Below, piece after piece: positions 8,701-59,136 of a DNA stretch of 64,000 nucleotides (within the stretch, counting starts at the first letter, position 1; each line of letters starts with the position of its first letter). The notes under the pieces are model-generated. The model ran no database searches, was not told the DNA's origin, and saw only the letters and a program-made list of their open reading frames with translations. The DNA is taken from NCBI GenBank assembly GCA_950097015.1, contig CATNEN010000034.1:2108001-2172000 (forward strand). The letters are read 5' to 3'. A program made the translations under genes and the position numbers. The DNA is from Macrostomum hystrix. Its lineage: Eukaryota; Animalia; Platyhelminthes.

Positions 8701-10100
8701 CCCTTAGTCTATGGCCCATACTCTCCTGATCCTTCAGTCTATGGCCCATGCTCTCTTGATCCTTCAGTCTGTGGCCCATACTCGCCTGATCATTCAGTCT
8801 ATGGCCCATGCTCTCCTGATCCTTCAGTCTGTGGCCCATACTCTCCTGATCCTTCAGTCTATGGCCCATACTCTCCTGATCCTTCAGTCTATGGCCCATA
8901 CTCTCCTGATCCTTCAGTCTGTGGCCCATGCTCTCCTGATCATTCAGTCTATGGCCCATGCTCTCCTGATCCTTCAGTCTGTGGCCCATGCTCTCCTGAT
9001 CATTCAGTCTATGGCCCACTCTTCTGATCCTTCAGTCTATGGCCCATACTCGCCTGATCATTCAGTCTATGGCCCATGCTCTCCTGATCCTTCAGTCTGT
9101 GGCCCATGCTCTCCTGATCCTTCAGTCTGTGGCCCATGCTCTCCTGATCATTCAGTCTATGGCCCATGCTCTCCTGATCCTTCAGTCTGTGGCCCATGCT
9201 CTCCTGATCATTCAGTCTATGGCCCATGCTCTCCTGATCCTTCAGTCTGTGGCCCATACTCTCCTGATCCTTCAGTCTGTGGCCCATGCTCTCCTGATCC
9301 TTCAGTCTATGGCCCATACTCTCCTGATCCTTCAGTCTATGGCCCATACTCTCCTGATCCTTCAGTCTGTGGCCCACTCTCCTGATCCTTCAGTCTGTGG
9401 CCCACTCTCCTGATCCTTCAGTCTGTGGCCCATACTCTCCTGATCCTACAGTTTATAGCCCACTCTCCTGATCCTTCAGTCTATGGCCCATACTCTCCTG
9501 ATCCTTCAGTCTGTGGCCCACTCTCCTGATCCTTCAGTCAATGGCCCATACTCTCCCGATCCTACAGTTTATAGCCCACTCTCCTGATCCTTCAGTCTAT
9601 GGCCCATGCTCTCCTGATCCTTCAGTCTGTGGCCCATGCTCTCCTGATCATTCAGTCTATGGCCCATGCTCTCCTGATCCTTCAGTCTGTGGCCCATACT
9701 CTCCTGATCCTTCAGTCTGTGGCCCATACTCTCCTGATCCTTCAGTCTGTGGCCCATACTCTCCTGATCCTTCAGTCTGTGGCCCATACTCTCCTGATCC
9801 TTCAGTCTGTGGCCCATACTCTCCTGATCCTTCAGTCTGTGGCCCATACTCTCCTGATCCTTCAGTCTGTGGCCCATGCTCTCCTGATCCTTCAGTCTAT
9901 GGCCCATACTCTCCTGATCCTTCAGTCTGTGGCCCATACTCTCCTGATCCTTCAGTCTGTGGCCCATACTCTCCTGATCCTTCAGTCTGTGGCCCATACT
10001 CTCCTGATCCTTCAGTCTGTGGCCCACTCTCCTGATCCTTCAGTCTGTGGCCCAAACTCTTTTGATCCTGCTCTTTAAGGCCCACTGTGCTGATCCTTCA
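2735..10100. repeat. ~7.3-kb 30/28-bp minisatellite (CTCTCCTGATCCTTCAGTCTGTGGCCCATA) with higher-order duplication
   Basis: Direct tandem periodicity. Rare variants recur 3014 bp apart (gtcaatgg at 6523/9537; cactcttctg variant unit at 6001/9015). Confidence 0.97.
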
Positions 10101-43318: not shown

Positions 43319-43326
43319 GGACCATC

Positions 43327-46300
43327 ACTGACGTAAACCTAGCCTCATGCCATCCTCACGATATTTGAAAACAACGTGCGATGGCTGCGATACTGCCTAA
43401 AATTAGCAGATACGATGAAGACAGATATGCAATGCCTGTTTTTGCATCGATATATGCCATGGTCGTGCGTGTGAATGGCTCTAAAATATGAAAGCATGAG
43501 GATGGCGTGAGGATGGCGTGAGGATGGCTTCCCAAAGATGCACATATCAACTAATTCGTGCGATGATTTCTAAATCCTACATAGGCACGTGCCAGTAATA
43601 ACTGTGTGAAATTTCAAATCAAGGCATCAAATTCTTTGCCTTTTAGGCACGTCGGAGAAACTAAATCGGCTGAAGTATGTGGTGTCTTGCTGCGATAAAA
43701 GAACGTATTATAGGGTACATTGCGAAAGCACACATATCGCATAGCTACTCTCCTAAACTACAAAAATTCGAAAACCGCAACTTTGCGATGGCCCTAGTTG
43801 CTGAGATCGACGTCATTATACATGAACATAAAATGTCACAAATTTCTCCCCGGCGTTATCAAAATTATTCCAAGCAAACTAACAAAACATTTGCCGCTGG
43901 AGACAACAATGTCGACAAAAACTAAAGTCTAACTTAGAGTTAAAACCAAAATTAACATTAAAGATATTCGATTATATCCGAGAAGACTGCACTCAGTCTG
44001 TTGTTAGTTATTGCATCAGTTACTTCTCCCACTTTGAATGTAAGCAAGACTTGTGCAAGGACCACTCTTCTTCTAGTGGTCCTTGTACTTATGACCTAGT
44101 GTACTGAATAGTGTACTTGGACACTCATAAAGAACAAAGATTAGGCCTATACAAGCAATGTAAACAAGTCATTGACTCATTGGTTGGCAACACTGTGCAT
44201 TTTTTACCTCATTCTCAGTGCAGTAGTGTCAATTATTGGTGTGTATCAGTGCAAGCTCATTTATTGCTTACCTACATTACAATCCTACATAATTAATTAT
44301 ATTGAGCATCTACTTGCCATTCATTTCAATTGGTTCTTTCCATTGGCATTATTATACATTATAATTGAGTTCCTCATTTTTGTACATTTATATACATGGA
44401 ATCAAACAAATGGTTGACAAGTCCCATGAAATTTATAATGCCATGCAGTCGCAGATAAAGAAGAAAAAAGTATTTTACGTTTCTTGGAACATCAAATAAG
44501 GCTGATAAGATGAGATAGATGATAAGATAATATAGACTAATATTAATAATATTAATTTTCTATCTTGTCTTTAATCAACTCATTAAACTCTAACTAACTT
44601 ACTTAATATGAAATTCTTGACATCGTTCCTTCATGTTCCATACATTCTTATCTTTATTTTTGTGCTGAAAATAGGTCAGTTGTTACTATTTGTCTTTGTC
44701 TAGACTAAACATTTATTTTGCATTAACAACATGAAGTTCTTGTTCTTTTGTGTTCTATATATTCTTGTCTATATATTTGTGTTGAAAGTAGAGCACCAAT
44801 TGTTATCTGTCTAGACTAAACATCCATGGTCCATAAAGAACATGAAATTCTTGTTCCTTCATGTTCCGTCTATTCTTGTCTATATATTTGCGTTGAAAGT
44901 AGAGCACCAATTGTTATCTGTCTAGACTAAACATCCATGGTCCATAAAGAACATGAAATTCTTGTTCCTTCATGTTCCGTCTATTCTTGTCTATATATTT
45001 GCGTTGAAAGTAGAGCACCAATTGTTATCTGTCTAGACTAAAAATCCATGGTCCATAAAGAACATGAAATTCTTGTTCCTTCATGTTCCGTCTATTCTTG
45101 TCTATATATTTGCGTTGAAAGTAGAGCACCAATTGTTATCTGTCTAGACTAAACATCCATGGTCCATAAAGAACATGAAATTCTTGTTCCTTCATGTTCC
45201 GTCTATTCTTGTCTATATATTTGTGTTGAAAGTAGAGCACCAATTGTTATCTGTCTAGACTAAAAATCCATGGTCCATAAAGAACATGAAATTCTTGTTC
45301 CTTCATGTTCCGTCTATTCTTGTCTATATATTTGCGTTGAAAGTAGAGCACCAATTGTTATCTGTCTAGACTAAACATCCATGGTCCATAAAGAACATGA
45401 AATTCTTGTTCCTTCATGTTCCGTCTATTCTTGTCTATATATTTGCGTTGAAAGTAGAGCACCAATTGTTATTTGTCTAGACTAAAAATCCATGGTCCAT
45501 AAAGAACATGAAATTCTTGTTCCTTCATGTTCCGTCTATTCTTGTCTATATATTTGCGTTGAAAGTAGAGCACCAATTGTTATCTGTCTAGACTAAACAT
45601 CCATGGTCCATAAAGAACATGAAATTCTTGTTCCTTCATGTTCCGTCTATTCTTGTCTATATATTTGCGTTGAAAGTAGAGCACCAATTGTTATCTGTCT
45701 AGACTAAAAATCCATGGTCCATAAAGAACATGAAATTCTTGTTCCTTCATGTTCCGTCTATTCTTGTCTATATATTTGCGTTGAAAGTAGAGCACCAATT
45801 GTTATCTGTCTAGACTAAACATCCATGGTCCATAAAGAACATGAAATTCTTGTTCCTTCATGTTCCGTCTATTCTTGTCTATATATTTGTGTTGAAAGTA
45901 GAGCACCAATTGTTATCTGTCTAGACTAAACATCCATGGTCCATAAAGAACATGAAATTCTTGTTCCTTCATGTTCCGTCTATTCTTGTCTATATATTTG
46001 CGTTGAAAGTAGAGCACCAATTGTTATCTGTCTAGACTAAACATCCATGGTCCATAAAGAACATGAAATTCTTGTTCCTTCATGTTCCGTCTATTCTTGT
46101 CTATATATTTGCGTTGAAAGTAGAGCACCAATTGTTATCTGTCTAGACTAAACATCCATGGTCCATAAAGAACATGAAATTCTTGTTCCTTCATGTTCCG
46201 CCTATTCTTGTCTATATATTTGTGTTGAAAGTAGAGCACCAATTGTTATCTGTCTAGACTAAACATCCATGGTCCATAAAGAACATGAAATTCTTGTTCC

Positions 46301-47052: not shown

Positions 47053-48465
47053 ATGAAGAACATGAACTATATGCTAAGTTTTCAATTTTTCCAGGCCTTC
47101 ATCAAGGACCCATATTACAAATTTGAGCCCAACGGGCCATTGCCGGATTTCATCCCTAAAGATATTGTTGTCGGCATTGAACTGTCTGCTGCCTGTGTCC
47201 GTGGTGCTGCTAGTATCCTTGGCATAAAATTTGCTAATAGCAAAATTCGAACTGTGAAAGGTACTTCATTTCAATACCTGACTGAAGATGGTAATGCACT
47301 TGCATACAGTAATGGTATAGCTATCTTTCGCACTCGAAGTATGGAAGCTGATTGCCGTCAGGATTTTTCAAAGCGGTGCAAGGCTGCAGAAGCGGGTAAG
47401 GTGTGGCTCGAAAGCAATGGATGGAAGGTTGTGGACAAGGAAATGTGTCGCCCGTCTGTTGCGGAGCACATATCAGAGGCGTTGAGGCATCTCGAATTGG
47501 CCGCATCGTTTTCGCCAGTGGAATTAATTTCTGTATTGAAAATTTCTATCGCCTGCATTCGGCAGTTGCAAGCCGAAGTTCGTGTAGCTGCAGCAGTTGG
47601 GAGTGTGGACATGCCAGCGACAGCGGGAGAACGAAAGGCGGCGGCAGCGAGGGAGCGAGAGGCGGCGAAAGAGCGAGAGCAGGTGGCGGCGAGGGAGCGA
47701 GAGGCGGCGAAAGAGCGAGAGCAGGCGGCGGCGGCTAGGGAGCGAGAGGCGGCGAAAGAGCGAGAGCAGGCGGCGGCGGCGAGAGAGCGAGAGTCGGCGA
47801 AAGAGCGAGAGCAGGTGGCGGCGAGGGAGCGAGAGGCGGCGAAAGAGCGAGAGCAGGCGGCGGCGGCGAGGGAGCGAGAGGCGGCGAAAGAGCGAGAGCA
47901 GGTGGCGGCGAGGGAGCGAGAGGCGGCGAAAGAGCGAGAGCAGGCGGCGGCGGCTAGGGAGCGAGAGGCGGCGGAAGAGCGAGAGCAGGCGGCGGCGGCG
48001 AGAGAGCGAGAGTCGGCGAAAGAGCGAGAGCAGGTGGCGGCGAGGGAGCGAGAGGCGGCGAAAGAGCGAGAGCAGGCGGCGGCGGCGAGGGAGCGAGAGG
48101 CGGCGAAAGAGCGAGAGCAGGCGGCGGCGGCGAGGGAGCGGCGAGAGGCGGCGGCGGCGAGGGAGCGAGAGGCGGTGGAAGAGCGAGAGCAGGCGGCGGC
48201 GACGAGGGAGCGGCGAGAGGCGGCGGCGGCGAGGGAGCGAGAGGCGGTGGAAGAGCGAGAGCAGGCGGCGGCGACGAGGGAGCGGCGAGAGGCGGCGGCG
48301 GCGAGGGAGCGAGAGGCGGTGGAAGAGCGAGAGCAGGCGGCGGCGGCAAAGGAGAGAGATGGAGATGAAAAGAAGAAGCGACGAAAGAGGAAGGCTGATC
48401 TGAGTGATATTACTGGTGGGACAGGTCGTAAGACTTATTTTACCAGAAGAATGGTCCAGATGTAA
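47053..48465 (+). CDS. Transposon accessory gene: unknown N-terminal domain, long E/R/A-rich helical repeat, basic NLS
   Basis: 470-codon open frame; a probable splice acceptor (TTTTTCCAG) at 47094 means the true start may be upstream. Non-repetitive ~190 aa, then AAAREREAAKEREQ repeats (about 47640-48360), then KKKRRKRK. Convergent with the transposase. Confidence 0.7.
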   Translation: MKNMNYMLSFQFFQAFIKDPYYKFEPNGPLPDFIPKDIVVGIELSAACVRGAASILGIKFANSKIRTVKGTSFQYLTEDGNALAYSNGIAIFRTRSMEADCRQDFSKRCKAAEAGKVWLESNGWKVVDKEMCRPSVAEHISEALRHLELAASFSPVELISVLKISIACIRQLQAEVRVAAAVGSVDMPATAGERKAAAAREREAAKEREQVAAREREAAKEREQAAAAREREAAKEREQAAAARERESAKEREQVAAREREAAKEREQAAAAREREAAKEREQVAAREREAAKEREQAAAAREREAAEEREQAAAARERESAKEREQVAAREREAAKEREQAAAAREREAAKEREQAAAARERREAAAAREREAVEEREQAAATRERREAAAAREREAVEEREQAAATRERREAAAAREREAVEEREQAAAAKERDGDEKKKRRKRKADLSDITGGTGRKTYFTRRMVQM

Positions 48466-48635: not shown

Positions 48636-50223
48636 ATAAGCGAGCGAGTAAGTTTTACATCTGGTGCCCGAGAGAGTAAATGGAATGTTTTTTGTGTGTG
48701 CTGTCGACAAATTTGCTGGTTGACATTGTCGTTTTCTAATGTTAAGATGTTTGCTGTCTGTAGTAATGTCGAAGGACCACAGCTAATACGAGAATCTATA
48801 ACTGCAATTGACGTCACCTCTTAGTACGCTTGCAATTCTGTCTTCTATGGAAATGCATTTTAATTTTTTCTATCGTAATCTGTTACTTATGCTGCATGGC
48901 AAGAAGAATACAACTTTTTTCATCGCATGGCATAAAAAGTCTGCTGTTATAACGCGTATTCTGCAAGTTGGTCTTGCAACTTTTCAGTTCGGCAAAAGCC
49001 TTTAAAGGGAAATATGAATTTTAATTTTTTTCTTATTTTGAACCAGCTTTAACTGGACAAAATGCAGCTCGTCGCACAAAATAGAAAACTTTAACCCTCC
49101 GAAACTGTACATGTAGCACACAAAAATTAAAACGAAACTCGTTCATGAGTAAACTGAAAGCGAGAATAAGAAGTATATTATTTTGAGTATACTAAAAGGG
49201 CAAAATGAAAACAACGAATTGCGCGACCAAAAAGTACATAAACGCTCAATTCTGCTGTCTGCTGGGCTGGGCGCCATTGCCCACATAAAAGTATAGAAGC
49301 GTAGAAGACATACATTGCCATTTCGACAACGACATAAACACTGCAAATGCGTTAGTATGAGGAGCAGCACAAATGAGCATATCAGGGTGCGAATGTGCTA
49401 CAAATGTAGAAATGCAACGTTAGCTAGAGTCATAAGAATTGGATAGCTGGGTTAACATAAGCAGACCACATCAAAAGAGAACAAGTTGAAGGACTATTTA
49501 CGGTGTTTTTACGGTATAGGACGGTACTATATTAGGAATTGGAGAACGCCGGCTAGGTTAGAAACGAGTACACTAAGATCTTAAAAGCGTCGCATCTGCA
49601 AGAAGGGAGTAGATGCAGGGTAGGGAAGAAGAGGTGATCCGTAATTTCTCCATTGTTAATTTCTACACTATTTGAGAGGGATTGGATATTTACAACAAAT
49701 TTCTTTATCATCCATATCATCCATCATCAATTGGCTCTGTGACGAAAAACAACATGGACAAAATATTCTCATTATCATGTTCAAAAAGCGGGCAACACTT
49801 CCTCAGTGCGTTTTTGCCATGTGACACCCATGCGGAAAAAACACTATCAGCAGTATATATCCTGATGCATGAATCAAACATAAAAACAATGACTTTAAAA
49901 TGCCCAAATACTCGAGTGCAAGGTCAAGAACAAGCCCATAGTATTATTATTGCTATTGGCAACTGACTACAATTGGCAAAAATTTGAAAGAGACCTAAAA
50001 ATCTGCAGATCGTCGAGATCTGAAAATTGGCGACAAACAAAATAATATCTGCAATCATTTGCCAACTCTTCTCGTCGTGCATTTGTGCGCTCTGTCGCTC
50101 TACACATCACCCCACACAAAAATGGTTGGTACTATATACTCGTAACATGAAATATTCTGTTGCCCTAAACTTCTGCAAACTACAAGCAGAAAATTTAACA
50201 CCATGTCCTTGAGGCATAGACCA

Positions 50224-53200
50224 TCAGCAACGGCACGTTCCGACGATGTAGACTAAAAGAGTCGGTCTGCCACGGTTCCGCTGCCGACCCTCCTTATAAA
50301 ATGGCAGTTTGCCTTGAGCACTAGATGCTGCGTCATCGTAGATGTAATGGGTGTTTCCACGAACGATGCGGCCGTAGAAATGACCGGGCACAGCAATTGT
50401 TGTGCAACAGAGATTGTAACTAAAATTAGTGAATAAAATTCCATACATTCGAAGCTTGCACCCAAGATACTAGTCATTAACTAGTTAAACCGTTAACTTT
50501 CTGTTAACGAAGTCAAGTTTTTTATTAACGATGCCCAACACATGCTGAAATTAGCTAGCCTGAATATGTAAGAATCACAAACGGCGCATTGAACCAGTCA
50601 ATCGGTAGCATACATTGTAGTCCCATCATGAAGAAACTACGCGGATGACATCGGAGTCCTTCCACAGCTGCCTGTGAACTTCCCCATCGAAGTCTTTCTA
50701 AAGCCCTCTCAGTCCATGCTTTAATCTCCAAATATTATCAAGCACCGGAAGTTGATATTCAAGAGAAATGTCAAAGGCAGCGTGCACTTACTGAATGGAT
50801 CCGTCCTCCGGGAAAGGATGCATGACTGAGTGAGGTGGGAGAGTCTCCCGACCCGTTGCCGAATCTGGAATGCCCACAACCACAACTGGCGGTGGAAAGT
50901 TGGCAAAGCGGGGATGGTGTAAGTAGCGCGAGTCGAGGTTACAGTCGAGGCATTCCACACAGCGGTCGCCAGAAGTAAATACTTCCCGAAGATAGGCCTC
51001 GGGAGACATTAAGATCCGGCGGCTGTCACCAGAGGGCGCTTGCTCCGGAGTTGGAAGCACAAGTTGGTAGAAGCGCCGTGTCTCCTCTTTGCGGCAGAAG
51101 GGGCAACCCACACGCTGAGTTATAGCATGAAACTCTCCGAGCACCCAGGTAGTAACATCCAGCGCTCCCTGGAATAGGCTTATATCGATTTCCTTGGAAG
51201 TGCTGGACCGGCGCCTCACGACAGCGCCACGCCGGTGCAATTCAGGACAACGCAGGAGCAGCCGAGCCCGAGCGAAATGGATACTCTCATGAGTAAAAGC
51301 CTGGACAGCTGCATGCAGAAAGTCAGTCAGGGGAGCGCAATCATCGGGAAGTCGCTGGACTGCCTGCCGAAACTCGGAATGGTCTCGCATTGCAAACGTC
51401 AAAGCTGTCAGCAAATGGTCAACTGTACAAGCATTCGAGACATGAACTGTTAAAACATCGTTGCCGTAAGGCACGTTACGAGAAGTCGAGTAGTTCCTCA
51501 GCATTGCAAACTGCACTTCTCTGGATGACTGGGCAAAGATAGCGGTTCGCTTCGGCGAAGTGTAGGTGGCTGATGGACGCTTGCGCTTCTTGTTTACGAT
51601 ACCAGCAAAATGTGTTCCTTCCTCTGTCAGATTCTCCTCGAACTCCATCGCTGTGAACGGATTCTCGGCTGAACGTTGGCTTGGACGAACGGAATTTCCA
51701 ACAGGCACAGAGGGTCCAGAGGCAGATGCGGAGCCTGGCACAGAGGGTCCAGAGGCAGATGAGGCAGATGCGGAGCCTGGCACAGAGGCAGATGAGGCAG
51801 ATGCGGAGCCTGGCACAGAGAGTCCAGAGGCAGATGCGGAGCCTGGCACAGAGGGTCCAGAGTCAGATGCGGAGCCTGGCACAGAGGGTCCAGAGGCAGA
51901 TGAGGCAGATGCGGAGCCTAACACAGAGGGTCCAGAGGCAGATGAGGCAGATGCGGAGCCTGGCACAGAGGCAGATGAGGCAGATGCGGAGCCTGGCACA
52001 GAGGGTCCAGAGGCAGATGCGGAGCCTGGCACAGAGGGTCCAGAGGCAGATGCGGAGCCTGGCACAGAGGGTCCAGAGTCAGATGCGGAGCCTGGCACAG
52101 AGGGTCCAGAGGCAGATGCGGAGCCTGGCACAGAGGGTCCAGAAGCAGATGAGGCAGATACGGAGCCGGGCACAGAATTTTCGTTAGTAAGAACAGACGC
52201 CCCTGGGGTAGTACGTGGCATTGTATCATTCTGCATAAAATGAGTTGGATGCTCGTTGGAGGAATTTGCTTCACTATCCGAGCAATCGGAGGTGCCGCTG
52301 CGAACGCCTTCCTGTTGCAAAAAGACTCCCAATGGTCGCAGGAACTGGTGGTACACTCCTGGCAGCTTTCTGTGCATTGTCCTAACAAAAGTCATGGCAC
52401 TTGGCCGCTGGTCATCAAGGAGGCTGCCCTTAATGAGGCGAATGCAGAGTTCAGTACTGCCCTCCTGGAAGCTGTGCAACGACTCAGGGGTTGCAGCATA
52501 CATTTCTTCCCGGGCGTAACGCCAAGGCTCAGACATTATGCTCGTAAAGAGCGGCAGGTACGGCAACATGACGTCAAGGAGCTTGCGTGCCAACGGAGTA
52601 CAGCGGAATGGATTCGGAACAGCGCGGAAATCTTCCTCGTCCAGGTTGGCTGAAAATCGATTCTCCAGTTGTTGGTGAACATTTTGAAAGATCTGCCAAA
52701 ATGGAGATGCCCTCTTGATTGTATTGTCGGGTCTAGCGTAGAGCAGTTCCTCCGCAGGAATAAATTCCTCCACATCATCCAGTTCGTCGGCAATGGCGGC
52801 GTCCAGCAGCTGCTTTGCAGCCACATTCTGGCCACCCAATGTGAGCTCCTCCATTGGAAGTTCTAGAACCTCCAGAGTTGGTGCAAGGAGCAGACCAAAG
52901 AATGCTGTAACTACCATTTTAGCTCTGGCGAGGCACGTTGTGCGTACAAGCGCACCAAAGACGTGCTTCCAATAGCACGAGGCTCTTTGTCCTGCCATGA
53001 GGTCACTATTGTCCAGCTCGTAAACTCGTGCACAATATGGCTCCTGCCAAGTCCCACGAGGCAGAATCCCCGAAGCTCACGCTGTGAGAAGGACCGACGG
53101 AGCACGGCGCAGCAGAGTCGTAAATATGGAAGAATGTCCATTCCATGGTGGGCATAGGTAAGTGCAGCCAGGCTGGGGATGTTGAAGTCAGTGACAGCTT

Positions 53201-54580
53201 GAAGCATTGTTAGGCTAGCAACGGATTTCCGTGCTGCTGTGATGAATGTGTCCAATGCAAACTTTATAGTGGACTTAGTCTGCGAGTTGGACAGAAGCAG
53301 CATAATTGGCACTGGAGCTTCCCCTTCAATTGGATGATGCAGAGCCAGGGCATGCAAGTAAGCACCGTGTCCATCGGCCAGGGGCGCACCAGTTGAGTCC
53401 AGACCGACACGAATCGGTAAATTGCGACAGTGAAGCACTTTTAGAAGCCGAATTGCTTTGTCCATATAGAGCAGGGCAAAGCGCGGGTGGCCAACACCTG
53501 GTCGTACGTTCACATCTCTGATGAACGGGGGATCGAGCATTTCCCCGTTCATTAGGATATCCATGATTTGATCCTGGGAAAACCTTTCTTTCAACCGCTC
53601 CTGAGATGCCGCAGTTCGCAGCACGCTAGAGGTCGGTACTTCCGGTGTAATGCCATCCGTAGCCAGCTCTGCAGACACAGAGTATGCGTTAGAGGAGTTG
53701 ACTCGCTGGGCCAACTCTTCTCGGCGATGACCTCTCAGTGGGCGTGGCTTCACAGTGTGCGGTTTAAGGGGGCCGCTCGCCCTCAGAGTCCACAGCAACC
53801 TACTATCCTGTGATGTTAGCCTGAAGCGAGCGTTGCAGGAGGTGACCCGGCAGTAGACATCTGCCGTCACCTCTGCCGAGGTAGCTGCCACCCTGCTTCG
53901 CTGCACGCATAAGCAACAGGAGAGCATAGTCGAGAAGTGCGGAAAGATGAAGTCCTGCCAGTTCTTTTGCAGACGTCCGCTGCTATCTAGGATGATCGCC
54001 GTGTGCAGTCTCGCATGAAAAATCGGCTGCTCACTGCAAAGAAATGACTCTTATTTGTATACATGCGATGAAGTTAGGGTCATGATGTTTCAAAAGAGCC
54101 CTGACTAAAGACCATTGTAAACAGGATTCATGCATGACACTGCAAAAGTTGATCTAAAAATCCAGCAAAATACTTACTCCTCATTGGCGCTTTCTTTGTC
54201 TAGGACTTCATCGTGGACAGGATCGTCTGATATATCTGTTAAAATCTTTACTGCGTTCCTGCGAAACTGGTCATACAGCCAGCGTCGGTGAATGAATGAG
54301 TCCTCAAAGCCCAACAGAATGCATGCCCTGGACCACACTGTCCCTACAGGTGTGGGTCCTGGCAGAGGCTTGGTAGCAACATCTGAGTAACTCAGACGAC
54401 GAGAGGCAAACAGGTTCTGAATGTCATCGACGGAGACGGTATTCCAATCTGAAATTAACATGGCAAGTCACTTAAATAGTCTGTACCATGAAAAAAAGGA
54501 GTCATATGCAACGTCTGCATGAGTGTTGCACAAAGTCTGAAGCAATCAGAAAAGACAACAGGGCAAAAAAACTTACTCAT
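50224..54580 (-). CDS. NOF/MULE-like DDE transposase fused to a C-terminal USP-like cysteine-protease domain (~1237 aa; one frameshift)
   Basis: Predicted exons 54580-54577 (ATGA|GTAAGT), 54448-54178, 54033-50792 and 50419-50224, with GT-AG junctions. Phases match if one base is added near 52987. Motifs: N-terminal VW...LY..FRRN helix region; CxxxxC..H zinc-finger-like segment; D1 VGLDSTG, D2 AVTDFN, RSH, LPYLPLFTSIM, E in GSTELCIRLIK; then SNAC, CPFC/CLDC, GHF and YDD. Confidence 0.8.
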
Positions 54581-54689
54581 TAGAAAGTCTGCTAATAATT
54601 GCCAGTCAAGCCCACAAAATCTGAAATGAAAGTGACACGTCTCATGTGCATAGCTTGAACATATAGATACATAGATGTACCACTATAAT

Positions 54690-57568
54690 AATGACTGAAC
54701 ATGAAGGAACAAGAATTTCGTGTTCTTTATGGACCATGGATTTTTAGTCTAGACAGATAACAATTGGTGCTCTACTTTCAACGCAAATATATAGACAAGA
54801 ATAGACGGAACATGAAGGAACAAGAATTTCATGTTCTTTATGGACCATGGATGTTTAGTCTAGACAGATAACAATTGGTGCTCTACTTTCAACGCAAATA
54901 TATAGACAAGAATAGACGGAACATGAAGGAACAAGAATTTCATGTTCTTTATGGACCATGGATGTTTAGTCTAGACAGATAACAATTGGTGCTCTACTTT
55001 CAACGCAAATATATAGACAAGAATAGACGGAACATGAAGGAACAAGAATTTCATGTTCTTTATGGACCATGGATGTTTAGTCTAGACAGATAACAATTGG
55101 TGCTCTACTTTCAACGCAAATATATAGACAAGAATAGACGGAACATGAAGGAACAAGAATTTCATGTTCTTTATGGACCATGGATGTTTAGTCTAGACAG
55201 ATAACAATTGGTGCTCTACTTTCAACGCAAATATATAGACAAGAATAGACGGAACATGAAGGAACAAGAATTTCATGTTCTTTATGGACCATGGATGTTT
55301 AGTCTAGACAGATAACAATTGGTGCTCTACTTTCAACGCAAATATATAGACAAGAATAGACGGAACATGAAGGAACAAGAATTTCATGTTCTTTATGGAC
55401 CATGGATGTTTAGTCTAGACAGATAACAATTGGTGCTCTACTTTCAACGCAAATATATAGACAAGAATAGACGGAACATGAAGGAACAAGAATTTCATGT
55501 TCTTTATGGACCATGGATTTTTAGTCTAGACAGATAACAATTGGTGCTCTACTTTCAACACAAATATATAGACAAGAATAGGCGGAACATGAAGGAACAA
55601 GAATTTCATGTTCTTTATGGACCATGGATGTTTAGTCTAGACAGATAACAATTGGTGCTCTACTTTCAACACAAATATATAGACAAGAATAGGCGGAACA
55701 TGAAGGAACAAGAATTTCATGTTCTTTATGGACCATGGATGTTTAGTCTAGACAGATAACAATTGGTGCTCTACTTTCAACGCAAATATATAGACAAGAA
55801 TAGACGGAACATGAAGGAACAAGAATTTCATGTTCTTTATGGACCATGGATTTTTAGTCTAGACAGATAACAATTGGTGCTCTACTTTCAACGCAAATAT
55901 ATAGACAAGAATAGACGGAACATGAAGGAACAAGAATTTCATGTTCTTTATGGACCATGGATGTTTAGTCTAGACAGATAACAATTGGTGCTCTACTTTC
56001 AACGCAAATATATAGACAAGAATAGACGGAACATGAAGGAACAAGAATTTCATGTTCTTTATGGACCATGGATGTTTAGTCTAGACAGATAACAATTGGT
56101 GCTCTACTTTCAACACAAATATATAGACAAGAATATATAGAACACAAAAGAACAAGAACTTCATGTTGTTAATGCAAAATAAATGTTTAGTCTAGACAAA
56201 GACAAATAGTAACAACTGACCTATTTTCAGCACAAAAATAAAGATAAGAATGTATGGAACATGAAGGAACGATGTCAAGAATTTCATATTAAGTAAGTTA
56301 GTTAGAGTTTAATGAGTTGATTAAAGACAAGATAGAAAATTAATATTATTAATATTAGTCTATATTATCTTATCATCTATCTCATCTTATCAGCCTTATT
56401 TGATGTTCCAAGAAACGTAAAATACTTTTTTCTTCTTTATCTGCGACTGCATGGCATTATAAATTTCATGGGACTTGTCAACCATTTGTTTGATTCCATG
56501 TATATAAATGTACAAAAATGAGGAACTCAATTATAATGTATAATAATGCCAATGGAAAGAACCAATTGAAATGAATGGCAAGTAGATGCTCAATATAATT
56601 AATTATGTAGGATTGTAATGTAGGTAAGCAATAAATGAGCTTGCACTGATACACACCAATAATTGACACTACTGCACTGAGAATGAGGTAAAAAATGCAC
56701 AGTGTTGCCAACCAATGAGTCAATGACTTGTTTACATTGCTTGTATAGGCCTAATCTTTGTTCTTTATGAGTGTCCAAGTACACTATTCAGTACACTAGG
56801 TCATAAGTACAAGGACCACTAGAAGAAGAGTGGTCCTTGCACAAGTCTTGCTTACATTCAAAGTGGGAGAAGTAACTGATGCAATAACTAACAACAGACT
56901 GAGTGCAGTCTTCTCGGATATAATCGAATATCTTTAATGTTAATTTTGGTTTTAACTCTAAGTTAGACTTTAGTTTTTGTCGACATTGTTGTCTCCAGCG
57001 GCAAATGTTTTGTTAGTTTGCTTGGAATAATTTTGATAACGCCGGGGAGAAATTTGTGACATTTTATGTTCATGTATAATGACGTCGATCTCAGCAACTA
57101 GGGCCATCGCAAAGTTGCGGTTTTCGAATTTTTGTAGTTTAGGAGAGTAGCTATGCGATATGTGTGCTTTCGCAATGTACCCTATAATACGTTCTTTTAT
57201 CGCAGCAAGACACCACATACTTCAGCCGATTTAGTTTCTCCGACGTGCCTAAAAGGCAAAGAATTTGATGCCTTGATTTGAAATTTCACACAGTTATTAC
57301 TGGCACGTGCCTATGTAGGATTTAGAAATCATCGCACGAATTAGTTGATATGTGCATCTTTGGGAAGCCATCCTCACGCCATCCTCACGCCATCCTCATG
57401 CTTTCATATTTTAGAGCCATTCACACGCACGACCATGGCATATATCGATGCAAAAACAGGCATTGCATATCTGTCTTCATCGTATCTGCTAATTTTAGGC
57501 AGTATCGCAGCCATCGCACGTTGTTTTCAAATATCGTGAGGATGGCATGAGGCTAGGTTTACGTCAGT
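54690..57568 (-). repeat. Right terminal inverted repeat (~13 x 111-bp array plus ~1.4 kb unique)
   Basis: CATGAAGGAACAAGAATTTC recurs every 111 bp from 54700 to 56032. Ends ...GGCTAGGTTTACGTCAGT. Confidence 0.95.
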
Positions 57569-59136
57569 GGACCATCGGGCTGTCAAGGCTGTATGTGATC
57601 ATGTTCATTATCGTTTTTATGCATGAGTAGAGAGACAGAATTCCTATCTCAAAGTCTGGCGAATCGACCAGGATATAGAAGTCCAGACTAAAAAGTACAA
57701 TCCAATAAAACAACAGGGGTAGTGCTGCCATGAAACTGGACAGCATCGAGTGAAAGATAAAGAACAGCTTGCCAGTTGGCCTGGACACAATCTCCAAGTA
57801 CTGCGCAAAGTGAAGCAAAGTGAAAGAAATAAACAATGTGTTTGATCCGATGAACATTTCCTGGGTTGTTACGCCAACATTATCGTTTCGGAGTGGGGGC
57901 AGAAGGGTGTAAAAGTCAGGTTTTTGTAGAAAACTTGACGATGTACAGAAAATGGCTCCGCTCAGGAGGGCAACGCACAGGTAGGTGTCGAAAACTGAGC
58001 GACGCACGAAGCAGCTGTGGCGACGTGGATTCGGGAGCATCAACCGTCTCTGACCTCGCTCGTAGATGTAGAAAAACAACTTTATCGTGACGACGAAGGA
58101 TTGGAGTATCAAAATCGTCGCTATCATCGAAATGCTGCCATTTACCGATAAGAAAATCTCAGTGCATGACTTTCGCTTCACAACCTGCAGCTCGAAGAAT
58201 TGATAGTACAGGCTTGTGTTGTAAAGGGACGTCTTGTTGTAGCCTTCACGCGCAGCGGCGGCAATTGTGGCACGATTGCAATGAAGCAAATTGCCGATGG
58301 ACGAGACGAACATCATGACGGACTCAAGGACGCCAGTCAGCAGAAACATCACCGTAGGCACACTTAAAATCAGCACACGCAGAACTGTTAGCATTCGAGT
58401 TTGTTGGATGTACAGGCGAAACCATTGTTGAATTTAAAGGATCTTCGAGTAGTTTAGACTTCTTCAGAGCCTCCACCTGGCTAGACCCCACGTAGGTGAG
58501 CAGATGCAGAGGACTCATTTGGCATCGGCTGCCATGACACAGGTCATAGTCTGTCAGATCATAGAGCCTCACCGTCCAACCGCCAGATCGACTAACCGAG
58601 CTCAGTAGATAGCTGGGAAGGTGCAGCAGCTTGCGAGCCAGTCTGAACGCGCCAAACTTAACACAAGCCTCAAGTGGTCTGAGTCCGGTCGAGTCCTCTT
58701 GCAAAATTAGACTGCTCAAAATGTGAGGCGTTCTGGCTAGTGTCGCCAGGATTGCCGCCTCGAACGCTTTGGCTCGTTTATACCTCGGCGCAAACATCTG
58801 GCAGCGCGCCAGACTGTGCAGTACGGTGCTGCCGTCGGGTTCCAGTTGGGCCAGGTGGTCAGCACAGTCGGCCAGCAGCAGATCAAATACCCGCACAGAC
58901 TGGAGCAGAATTGCCAGGTGAATGGGGTAGGCGAATTGCAGACTCAGCAATCCATACTTTGTGGACTTCTGTCGACGGCATCGACCCGGGCACCGCATCG
59001 CTGCGGGTAAGCCGTCCACAGTGTCGCACAGCGGCTGAGCTAGTTTTCCTGCCAGGTCCGGCCCCATTGCCTGCACGAAGGCCACCGGGTCATCATCAGC
59101 GAGTGCCTGCAGGGCCTCTTCCGATGAATAATGCAT
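57569..59136 (-). pseudogene. Intronless TRPV-like cation channel, 5' part (ankyrin repeats, S1-S5, pore); disrupted
   Basis: ATG at 59136. Ankyrin-like YPIHLA, GSTVLHSLA and GLRPLEAC; TRPV linker LYDLTDYD (compare TRPV5/6 LYDLTEID); multiple hydrophobic helices. A 1-bp frameshift near 58434 links the two ORFs (PL|IQQWFRLY). Truncated by the transposon just before S6. Confidence 0.85.

Follow-up and report, generated by a model that had tools for sequence, protein, structure and literature searches.

A stretch of DNA from the flatworm Macrostomum hystrix raises the question of whether a DNA transposase can end in a protease domain of the ubiquitin-specific protease (USP) type. The stretch, called the window here, is 64,000 nt long (contig CATNEN010000034.1 of assembly GCA_950097015.1, forward-strand positions 2,108,001 to 2,172,000), and coordinates below are window positions. 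It contains a foldback element with a minus-strand gene, 54580 to 50224, that can reasonably be regarded as the transposase gene of an element related to Mutator-like elements (MULEs). A first-pass annotation had proposed that this transposase carries a USP-like domain with an intact Cys-His-Asp triad. Having followed up this proposal, we consider it fairly probable that the last ~300 residues of the transposase are a very divergent USP-fold cysteine isopeptidase domain. The resemblance exceeds chance, because the domain is conserved at 24-31% identity and because profile, language-model and structure searches all gave USP-specific matches.

The C-terminal domain and its last exon

With its three introns removed and an N inserted at 52985/52986, where the window breaks frame (see below), the coding sequence is 3714 nt long; its 1237-aa translation contains one X and is free of internal stops. 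The protein comprises, in order, a MULE-like core, a 158-aa low-complexity linker of Ser/Pro/Gly/Ala repeats (51703-52176), a basic patch, KKRKR (within NKKRKRP, 51577-51591), which is a putative nuclear localisation signal, and the ~300-aa C-terminal domain. The domain opens with the Cys box SNACTVD (51418-51438, within SNACTVDHLL), whose Cys961 (codon 51429-51427) is the putative catalytic residue. It continues with a fingers-like zinc ribbon (50941-51105) that extends from CPFC (51105-51094) to CVECLDC (50961-50941), and with a strand, PPPVVVV (50875-50895), downstream of the ribbon. Core, linker, basic patch, Cys box and fingers are all encoded by exon 3 (50792-54033), which was delimited by open frames and by contigs. 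The remainder of the domain lies in the last exon (50224-50419), placed by contigs and by homologue alignment. This exon reads YNLCC..PGHFYG..YIYDD..LLVY up to the stop codon and holds Y-x-L, the His box PGHFYG (His1186, codon 50382-50380), YIYDD (Asp1201, codon 50337-50335) and LLVY. His1186 and Asp1201 are 15 residues apart, similar to the spacing of 17 residues in USP7.

The two exons are separated by intron 3 (50420-50791, 372 nt, GTAAGT..TTTTAG), which splits the USP-like domain ahead of the His box. The minus-strand open reading frame (ORF) 52998-50788 ends at a stop codon inside the GTAAGT that starts at 50791. The first-pass annotation had assigned the His/Asp half to a separate exon joined in frame. 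Its motifs and splice signals (the linker, KKRKR, SNACTVD, CPFC, CVECLDC, GTAAGT at 50791 and TTTTAG at 50420) all lie on the minus strand where it had put them, and the exon assignment is borne out by transcripts. Sampled words of 50200-54500 were searched for in public sequencing runs, and 74-78% were present in four small runs, all from one 2020 study of a single organism. Contigs from three of these runs (X2, X3 and X4) lack the introns and are therefore RNA-derived; a run from a different study (X1) yielded two short pieces only. In X2 and X3 the contigs join 50419 directly to 50792, with CT..AC on the plus strand, that is, GT..AG on the minus strand. The X4 contig agrees with this junction, since at its loose end, at 50792, it continues with the 17 nt that open the last exon. 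Exon 3 and the last exon join in frame within a split His codon, CA|T, after which the protein continues YNLCCTTIAVPGHFYGRIVRGNTHYIYDD...LLVYIVGTCRC to the stop.

To find relatives, a 270-aa C-terminal piece was compared by phmmer with 1.84 billion representative proteins, and four proteins were found. The best match was a partial Macrostomum lignano protein whose 90% cluster includes PAA68264.1 (hereafter P0006), a full-length, annotated and spliced M. lignano protein of 1106 aa. Homologous-protein searches with the window C-terminal piece returned nothing, and one with P0001, a cluster mate of P0006, returned P0001 itself only. P0006 and the window protein align colinearly from end to end, with 42% identity in the core (E 2e-89), 31% in the C-terminal domain (E 2e-28) and 33% in the last exon (E 0.006); the counterpart of the basic patch in P0006 is NKKRR. 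A third lineage, L002, on an ENA contig, has a USP-like domain that is 24% identical. The position and phase of intron 3 are common to the window, P0006 and L002, and in each case it splits a CA|N His codon directly before Y-x-L. In the three-lineage alignments, 39 of the 320 columns are identical. The invariant positions include N-x-C-T-x-D, the zinc cysteines, the PP of the lPPvL strand, Y-x-L, the His of GH[FYW] and Y-D. P0006 and L002 retain the zinc Cys pairs, at spacings that vary, and the Cys of the Cys box is invariant in an alignment of four sequences. Cys961, His1186 and Asp1201 are all invariant, so that at the residue level the triad is intact, as had been proposed. Most likely, this transposase family already had the USP-like module before it divided into the three lineages.

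These comparisons bear on the possibility that the tail is a useless host fragment captured in the manner of a Pack-MULE, or that its motifs resemble those of USPs by chance within an unrelated fold. That no curated family model recognises the domain would fit such an origin, and MULEs are known to capture fragments of host genes (PMC8277862). However, element families at 31% and 24% identity have kept the domain open and colinear, the lineages have the intron position, its phase and the invariant residues in common, the tail is spliced and transcribed, and the fold searches described below are dominated by one fold. Because of the conservation and the common intron in particular, we regard a captured fragment or a chance resemblance as highly improbable.

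In all three lineages the USP-like domain is preceded by a linker of low-complexity tandem repeats, whose sequence is unrelated between them. The linker is Ser/Pro/Gly/Ala in the window, Ser/Glu-rich in P0006 (residues 640-780) and acidic in L002 (positions 1-500). The conserved property of the linker seems to be disorder or length rather than sequence.

A paralogous copy in M. lignano (L001, NIVC01000212.1), situated behind P0001, has an in-frame stop at positions 8925-8927 of that sequence, inside the USP-like domain and after ...FLRWR. At this position P0006 has R, and P0006 is complete.

Fold and putative activity of the domain

Sequence profiles gave a first indication of the fold. A profile of the first part of the family was compared with 177,635 PDB sequences, and the best match was the catalytic domain of USP9X (5wch_A, E 0.025). 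In this alignment, CxxC...CxxC...lPPvLvv falls on the zinc-ribbon fingers of USP9X and on the strand that follows them, with CPFC and CVEC on the CxxC pairs. For an unspecified member of the family, the last exon touched the USPL1-type Pfam family Peptidase_C98 weakly (E 0.035). Residues 820-1106 of P0006 gave a similarly weak match (E 0.21) over the His-box positions of the same model. Comparison of language-model features with 7.7 million clusters placed the window piece nearest to a C14orf28/DRIP1 cluster (0.97), with clusters of the UCH family at 0.85-0.87. The full domain of P0006 was nearest to C14orf28 (0.96) and to hypothetical proteins of Basidiomycota (0.96 and 0.95), followed by UCH (PF00443) clusters at 0.94, 0.92 and 0.90. 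Single-sequence phmmer matches in the PDB to RnlB and BamD, and a match of a last-exon-only profile to PBP1A, were judged to be chance.

Predicted structures were obtained with AlphaFold for two pieces, namely the exon-3 piece of the window, which is a partial domain, and the complete domain of the M. lignano paralogue (P0006, residues 812-1106). The mean predicted local distance difference test (pLDDT) score was 52.7 for the window piece, with 65-87 in the thumb. For the P0006 domain it was 48.8, with 74-87 in the thumb, below 50 in the palm and a predicted template modelling (pTM) score of 0.52. The first long helix begins at the conserved Cys in each of the two models: at C58 in the window piece (helix 58-73) and at C33 in the P0006 domain (helix 33-48). 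The strands PPLLVVA, YRLFCSTYFQ, AHWVATIHSD, LNY and LAMYA of the P0006 model occur in the order of a USP palm.

The P0006 model was compared exhaustively with 48,161 PDB representatives using VIA-align. USP-fold chains made up matches 1-32 and 34 of the top 35, with Z scores of 6.0-4.0. The first 32 matches included USP1, USP9X, USPL1, USP16, USP25, USP7, USP18, USP30, USP14, USP35, USP28 and USP2, together with Ubp6, USP36, USP12, USP11, PAN2, USP47, Ubp8, CYLD, USP34, USP54 and USP5. Match 33 was an unnamed protein; it was followed by Sad1, a yeast splicing factor that has a USP-like domain, and by the USP-like TssM, and next came coronavirus PLpro, OTUB1 and ATG4. With the partial window model, nine USPs were among the top 10 (Z 4.4-3.8, ~85 residues at 3.3-4.0 A). 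These alignments begin 5-6 residues before the Cys, i.e. from the Cys box onward, and if ungapped they would presumably put it on the catalytic Cys of USP14, USP25, USP28, USP1, USP9X, USP30 and Ubp8. No match titled as a Ulp1 or SENP protease appeared in the VIA lists of either model. A check by AlphaFold and Foldseek, which the first-pass annotation had suggested, pointed the same way for the low-confidence model of the P0006 domain: the top five Foldseek matches in the PDB were USP18 and USP21, with E values from 0.06. A shape search of the ESM atlas with the same model gave C14orf28 first, with a template modelling (TM) score of 0.47 (172 residues, 4.0 A), and the next match was at 0.27 or below. 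MarR and RIO2, which were matched by the partial window model (pLDDT 52.7) in the Foldseek PDB and atlas shape searches, were judged meaningless.

Several results weigh against a USP-type protease domain and have to be set beside these matches. Neither UCH (PF00443) nor UCH_1 (PF13423) was matched in Pfam at E values up to 10 by the window pieces, L001, L002 or the full domain of P0006, and no significant match to Peptidase_C98 was obtained. The phmmer search of 1.84 billion representatives recovered no canonical USP and did not reach C14orf28. Both predicted models are poor, with pLDDT below 50 in the palm half, and the full-domain model is that of a 31%-identical paralogue rather than of the window protein. 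The VIA Z scores are only 4-6, and each is below what the tool regards as safe. Inactive USP-fold proteins are among the structural matches, namely PAN2, which is labelled a pseudoubiquitin-hydrolase, and Sad1, which is likewise inactive. The residue five positions before Cys961, where canonical USPs have the oxyanion-hole Asn, is H, M or Q across the lineages and not conserved. Finally, the window frame itself is broken at 52985/52986, where the two long ORFs, 53927-52911 and 52998-50788, overlap in different frames. All contigs of X2-X4 have one extra base after 52985, in what is an A-run on the minus strand, and no further difference between contigs and window is listed over ~4 kb. This points either to a homopolymer error in the assembly or to a very recent frameshift mutation of this copy.

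For a structural comparison of this quality, the weight lies in the near-exclusive recovery of a single fold, as a match at the level of topology. Taking the sequence-based and structural results together, we consider a USP fold very likely. The first-pass annotation had read the order of the motifs as the layout of the USP/C19 peptidases. This stands as far as the fold is concerned, since the fold searches return almost only USP-fold proteins. As a family assignment it does not stand, as the domain lacks a Pfam UCH match and is not a recognisable member of C19. Searches for other relevant families gave no Pfam match to Peptidase_C48 (Ulp1) or OTU on the domain and nothing relevant on any of the window ORF pieces. 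The nearest relatives of the domain appear to be a C14orf28/DRIP1-like branch of USP-like proteins rather than the canonical C19 enzymes, an apparent kinship that is read from features (0.96-0.97) and shape (TM 0.47). We tentatively suggest, as a rather doubtful extension, that the transposon domain, vertebrate C14orf28/DRIP1 and unannotated Basidiomycota proteins of ~280-330 aa form one USP-fold branch that spread with, or was domesticated from, MULE-like foldback transposases.

If the domain folds as predicted, its parts would follow one another as in a USP: a helical thumb in which Cys961 begins a helix, the CxxC...CxxC fingers, and a palm in which His1186 and Asp1201 would be contributed by the separate and genuinely spliced last exon. 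Such a domain may be an active protease of ubiquitin or of a ubiquitin-like modifier, and we rate catalytic activity as moderately likely. It would enter the nucleus together with the transposase by means of KKRKR. There it may strip modifiers from the transposase itself and thereby prevent its degradation; alternatively, it may act at the donor or target site, on chromatin or on repair proteins. Such a role has been proposed for the Ulp1 and OTU domains that other DNA transposons encode, and this analogy makes the earlier suggestion for the present element plausible, namely a deubiquitinase that keeps the transposase stable or frees chromatin from marks. The substrate could be ubiquitin or SUMO; USPL1 is an example of a SUMO-specific USP fold.

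The same fold could also serve without cleavage. In that case the tail would be a pseudo-enzyme that binds ubiquitin, a ubiquitin-like modifier or a partner, for example as a tether to modified chromatin or to a host factor, and USP39/Sad1 are precedents for this beside PAN2. The presence of PAN2 and Sad1 among the structural matches, the lack of conservation at the oxyanion-hole Asn position and the strong divergence from all active C19 families are in its favour. In contrast, three lineages with only 24-31% identity show no change at the Cys, the His, the Asp or the N two positions ahead of the Cys, and pseudo-USPs usually lose at least one triad residue. We therefore regard a binding-only domain as unlikely, and an active isopeptidase remains our preferred reading.

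Cleavage could, on the other hand, be directed at the transposase itself. A protease acting in cis could cut the transposase precursor in or near the linker and free the core, in the way of the coronavirus papain-like proteases, which have a USP fold. Viral proteases of the PLpro type do occur lower in the fold lists, and in every one of the three lineages the two modules are set apart by a long disordered linker. Against this, the search for a conserved LxGG-like site gave none, LTLGG in the window protein being without a counterpart in P0006; the linker sequences are unrelated between the lineages; and the closest structural matches are cellular USPs and not PLpro. A processing protease of this kind is thus quite improbable, and an isopeptidase acting on ubiquitin or a ubiquitin-like modifier is the reading we carry forward.

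Gene structure and the host element

The contigs from X2-X4, together with the window, give the transposase gene four exons and three introns. The coding part of the 5' exon ends at 54577-54580, with the start codon ATG at 54580-54578 followed by one base. The spliced contigs run from 54448 into this exon, ending at 54577, and their loose end behind 54448 corresponds to window positions 54577-54606. Intron 1 (54449-54576, 128 nt, GT..AG) has its GTAAGT donor at 54576, so that a single base lies between the start codon and the intron (ATGA|GTAAGT...), which cuts this codon off from the remaining coding sequence. Exon 2 (54178-54448) encodes the N-terminal region of the protein. Intron 2 (54034-54177, 144 nt, GT..AG) is removed in all three runs, whose contigs join 54033 to 54178 in pieces covering 53762-54033 and 54178-54448. 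The X2-X4 contigs also join 53762 to 50352, skipping 3409 nt; this joint has non-canonical ends and a 4-nt overlap, is out of frame and extends for just 26 nt on one side. It is probably the transcript of an internally deleted copy or an artefact of the assembly graph.

The element is bounded by terminal inverted repeats (TIRs) with arms of 2873 nt that are 100% complementary, the left at 43326-46198 and the right at 54697-57569, and both are filled with internal tandem repeats. The transposase gene begins at the inner edge of the right TIR. Since its 5' exon extends upstream toward or into this edge, the promoter of the transposase probably lies in the TIR. A direct repeat, GACCAT, is present on both flanks (43320-43325 and 57570-57575) and is 6 or at most 7 bp long; for Mutator-like and FB-NOF elements, a target-site duplication of ~9 bp (8-11 bp) is expected. 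Language-model features of the core (P0006, residues 100-640) are nearest to clusters of the MULE transposase family PF10551 (0.89-0.94). No Pfam match to the MULE models (PF10551/PF00872) was obtained at E values up to 1 for the window core ORF or up to 10 for residues 100-560 of P0006, and no PHD finger was matched in Pfam. The assignment of the gene to the transposase of a foldback MULE-like element is reasonable, and it is based on these features and on the anatomy of the element rather than on a match to a curated model.

A second gene of the element (47053-48465, plus strand) is convergent with the transposase gene and encodes a long AAREREAAKEREQ repeat followed by a basic tail; it gave no family match in passing. 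Downstream of the L001 copy in M. lignano there is a convergent gene of 405 aa, which mirrors this two-gene layout.

Comparison with known systems

DNA transposons have repeatedly come to carry proteases of the ubiquitin/SUMO system, with Ulp1 in MULEs and Ginger elements and OTU in Helitrons and Ginger elements. To our knowledge, nobody knows the role of these proteases in transposition. The element described here would place a USP-type protease on a recently active, transcribed, foldback MULE-like element, which strengthens the idea that cut-and-paste elements in general need to have ubiquitin-like marks removed. Its host genus, Macrostomum, is a flatworm tractable to transgenesis and offers a test system. 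Domains of this sort escape both Pfam-based annotation and single-exon ORF tracks.

Compared with canonical USP/UBP enzymes (MEROPS C19, PF00443; for example USP9X, USP7 and USP1), the domain has the same succession of parts: an N-x-C box, a helical thumb, a CxxC...CxxC ribbon and an lPPvL strand, continuing with Y-x-L, GH[FYW], aromatic-D and a terminal hydrophobic Y strand. It differs in the Cys box, which is N-[AT]-C-T-x-D here and N-T-C-[YF]-x-N-S in canonical USPs. It is also compact (~300 aa), lies at the C-terminus of a transposase and has no significant Pfam UCH match.

The nearest protein by features and shape, C14orf28/DRIP1, is a vertebrate protein of unknown function and similar size (~310-330 aa). 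It has been classified as a papain-like deubiquitinase domain grouped with USPs and CYLD (PMC10318531). C14orf28/DRIP1 is a stand-alone host gene, whereas the domain here is part of a transposase. Their kinship is so far a lead; if true, it would link an orphan vertebrate gene to transposon biology. A common branch would give human C14orf28 an evolutionary origin and a testable function, as an isopeptidase for ubiquitin or ubiquitin-like modifiers acting on chromatin or repair factors.

Among mobile elements, FB-NOF/Rehavkus also enclose a transposase gene between kilobase TIRs full of tandem repeats, and the core here is nearest to MULE clusters by features. The present element differs from them in having no Pfam MULE match, no PHD finger and a direct repeat of 6-7 bp rather than 9 bp. 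In the literature searched we found no USP or deubiquitinase domain described for elements of the MULE, NOF or Rehavkus kinds or of Macrostomum. What has been described from MULE, Ginger and Helitron elements are Ulp1 and OTU domains (PMC2836005). The Ulp1 (C48) domains of KI-MULEs and Ginger1 and the OTU domains of Helitrons and Ginger1 are likewise transposon-encoded cysteine proteases of the ubiquitin/SUMO system and are often C-terminal. They belong to different fold families, whereas the structural matches obtained here are of USP type.

The Trichomonas vaginalis protein XP_001314237.1 has a C19 domain (CDD cd02657) fused to an IS5-like transposase (transposase_11) (PMC2836005), and it is the only published C19-transposase fusion that we found in the literature. 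It is thus a published example of a DNA transposase that bears a C19-type domain. Compared by description, its transposase is IS5-like rather than MULE-like, and its C19 domain is recognised by cd02657, whereas the domain here is recognised by no curated model. The general theme of ubiquitin-family proteases borne by transposons is thus already known from Ulp1, OTU and one C19 fusion. As read here, the tail of the Macrostomum transposase adds a third kind, USP-type, to the ubiquitin-family proteases that DNA transposons carry.

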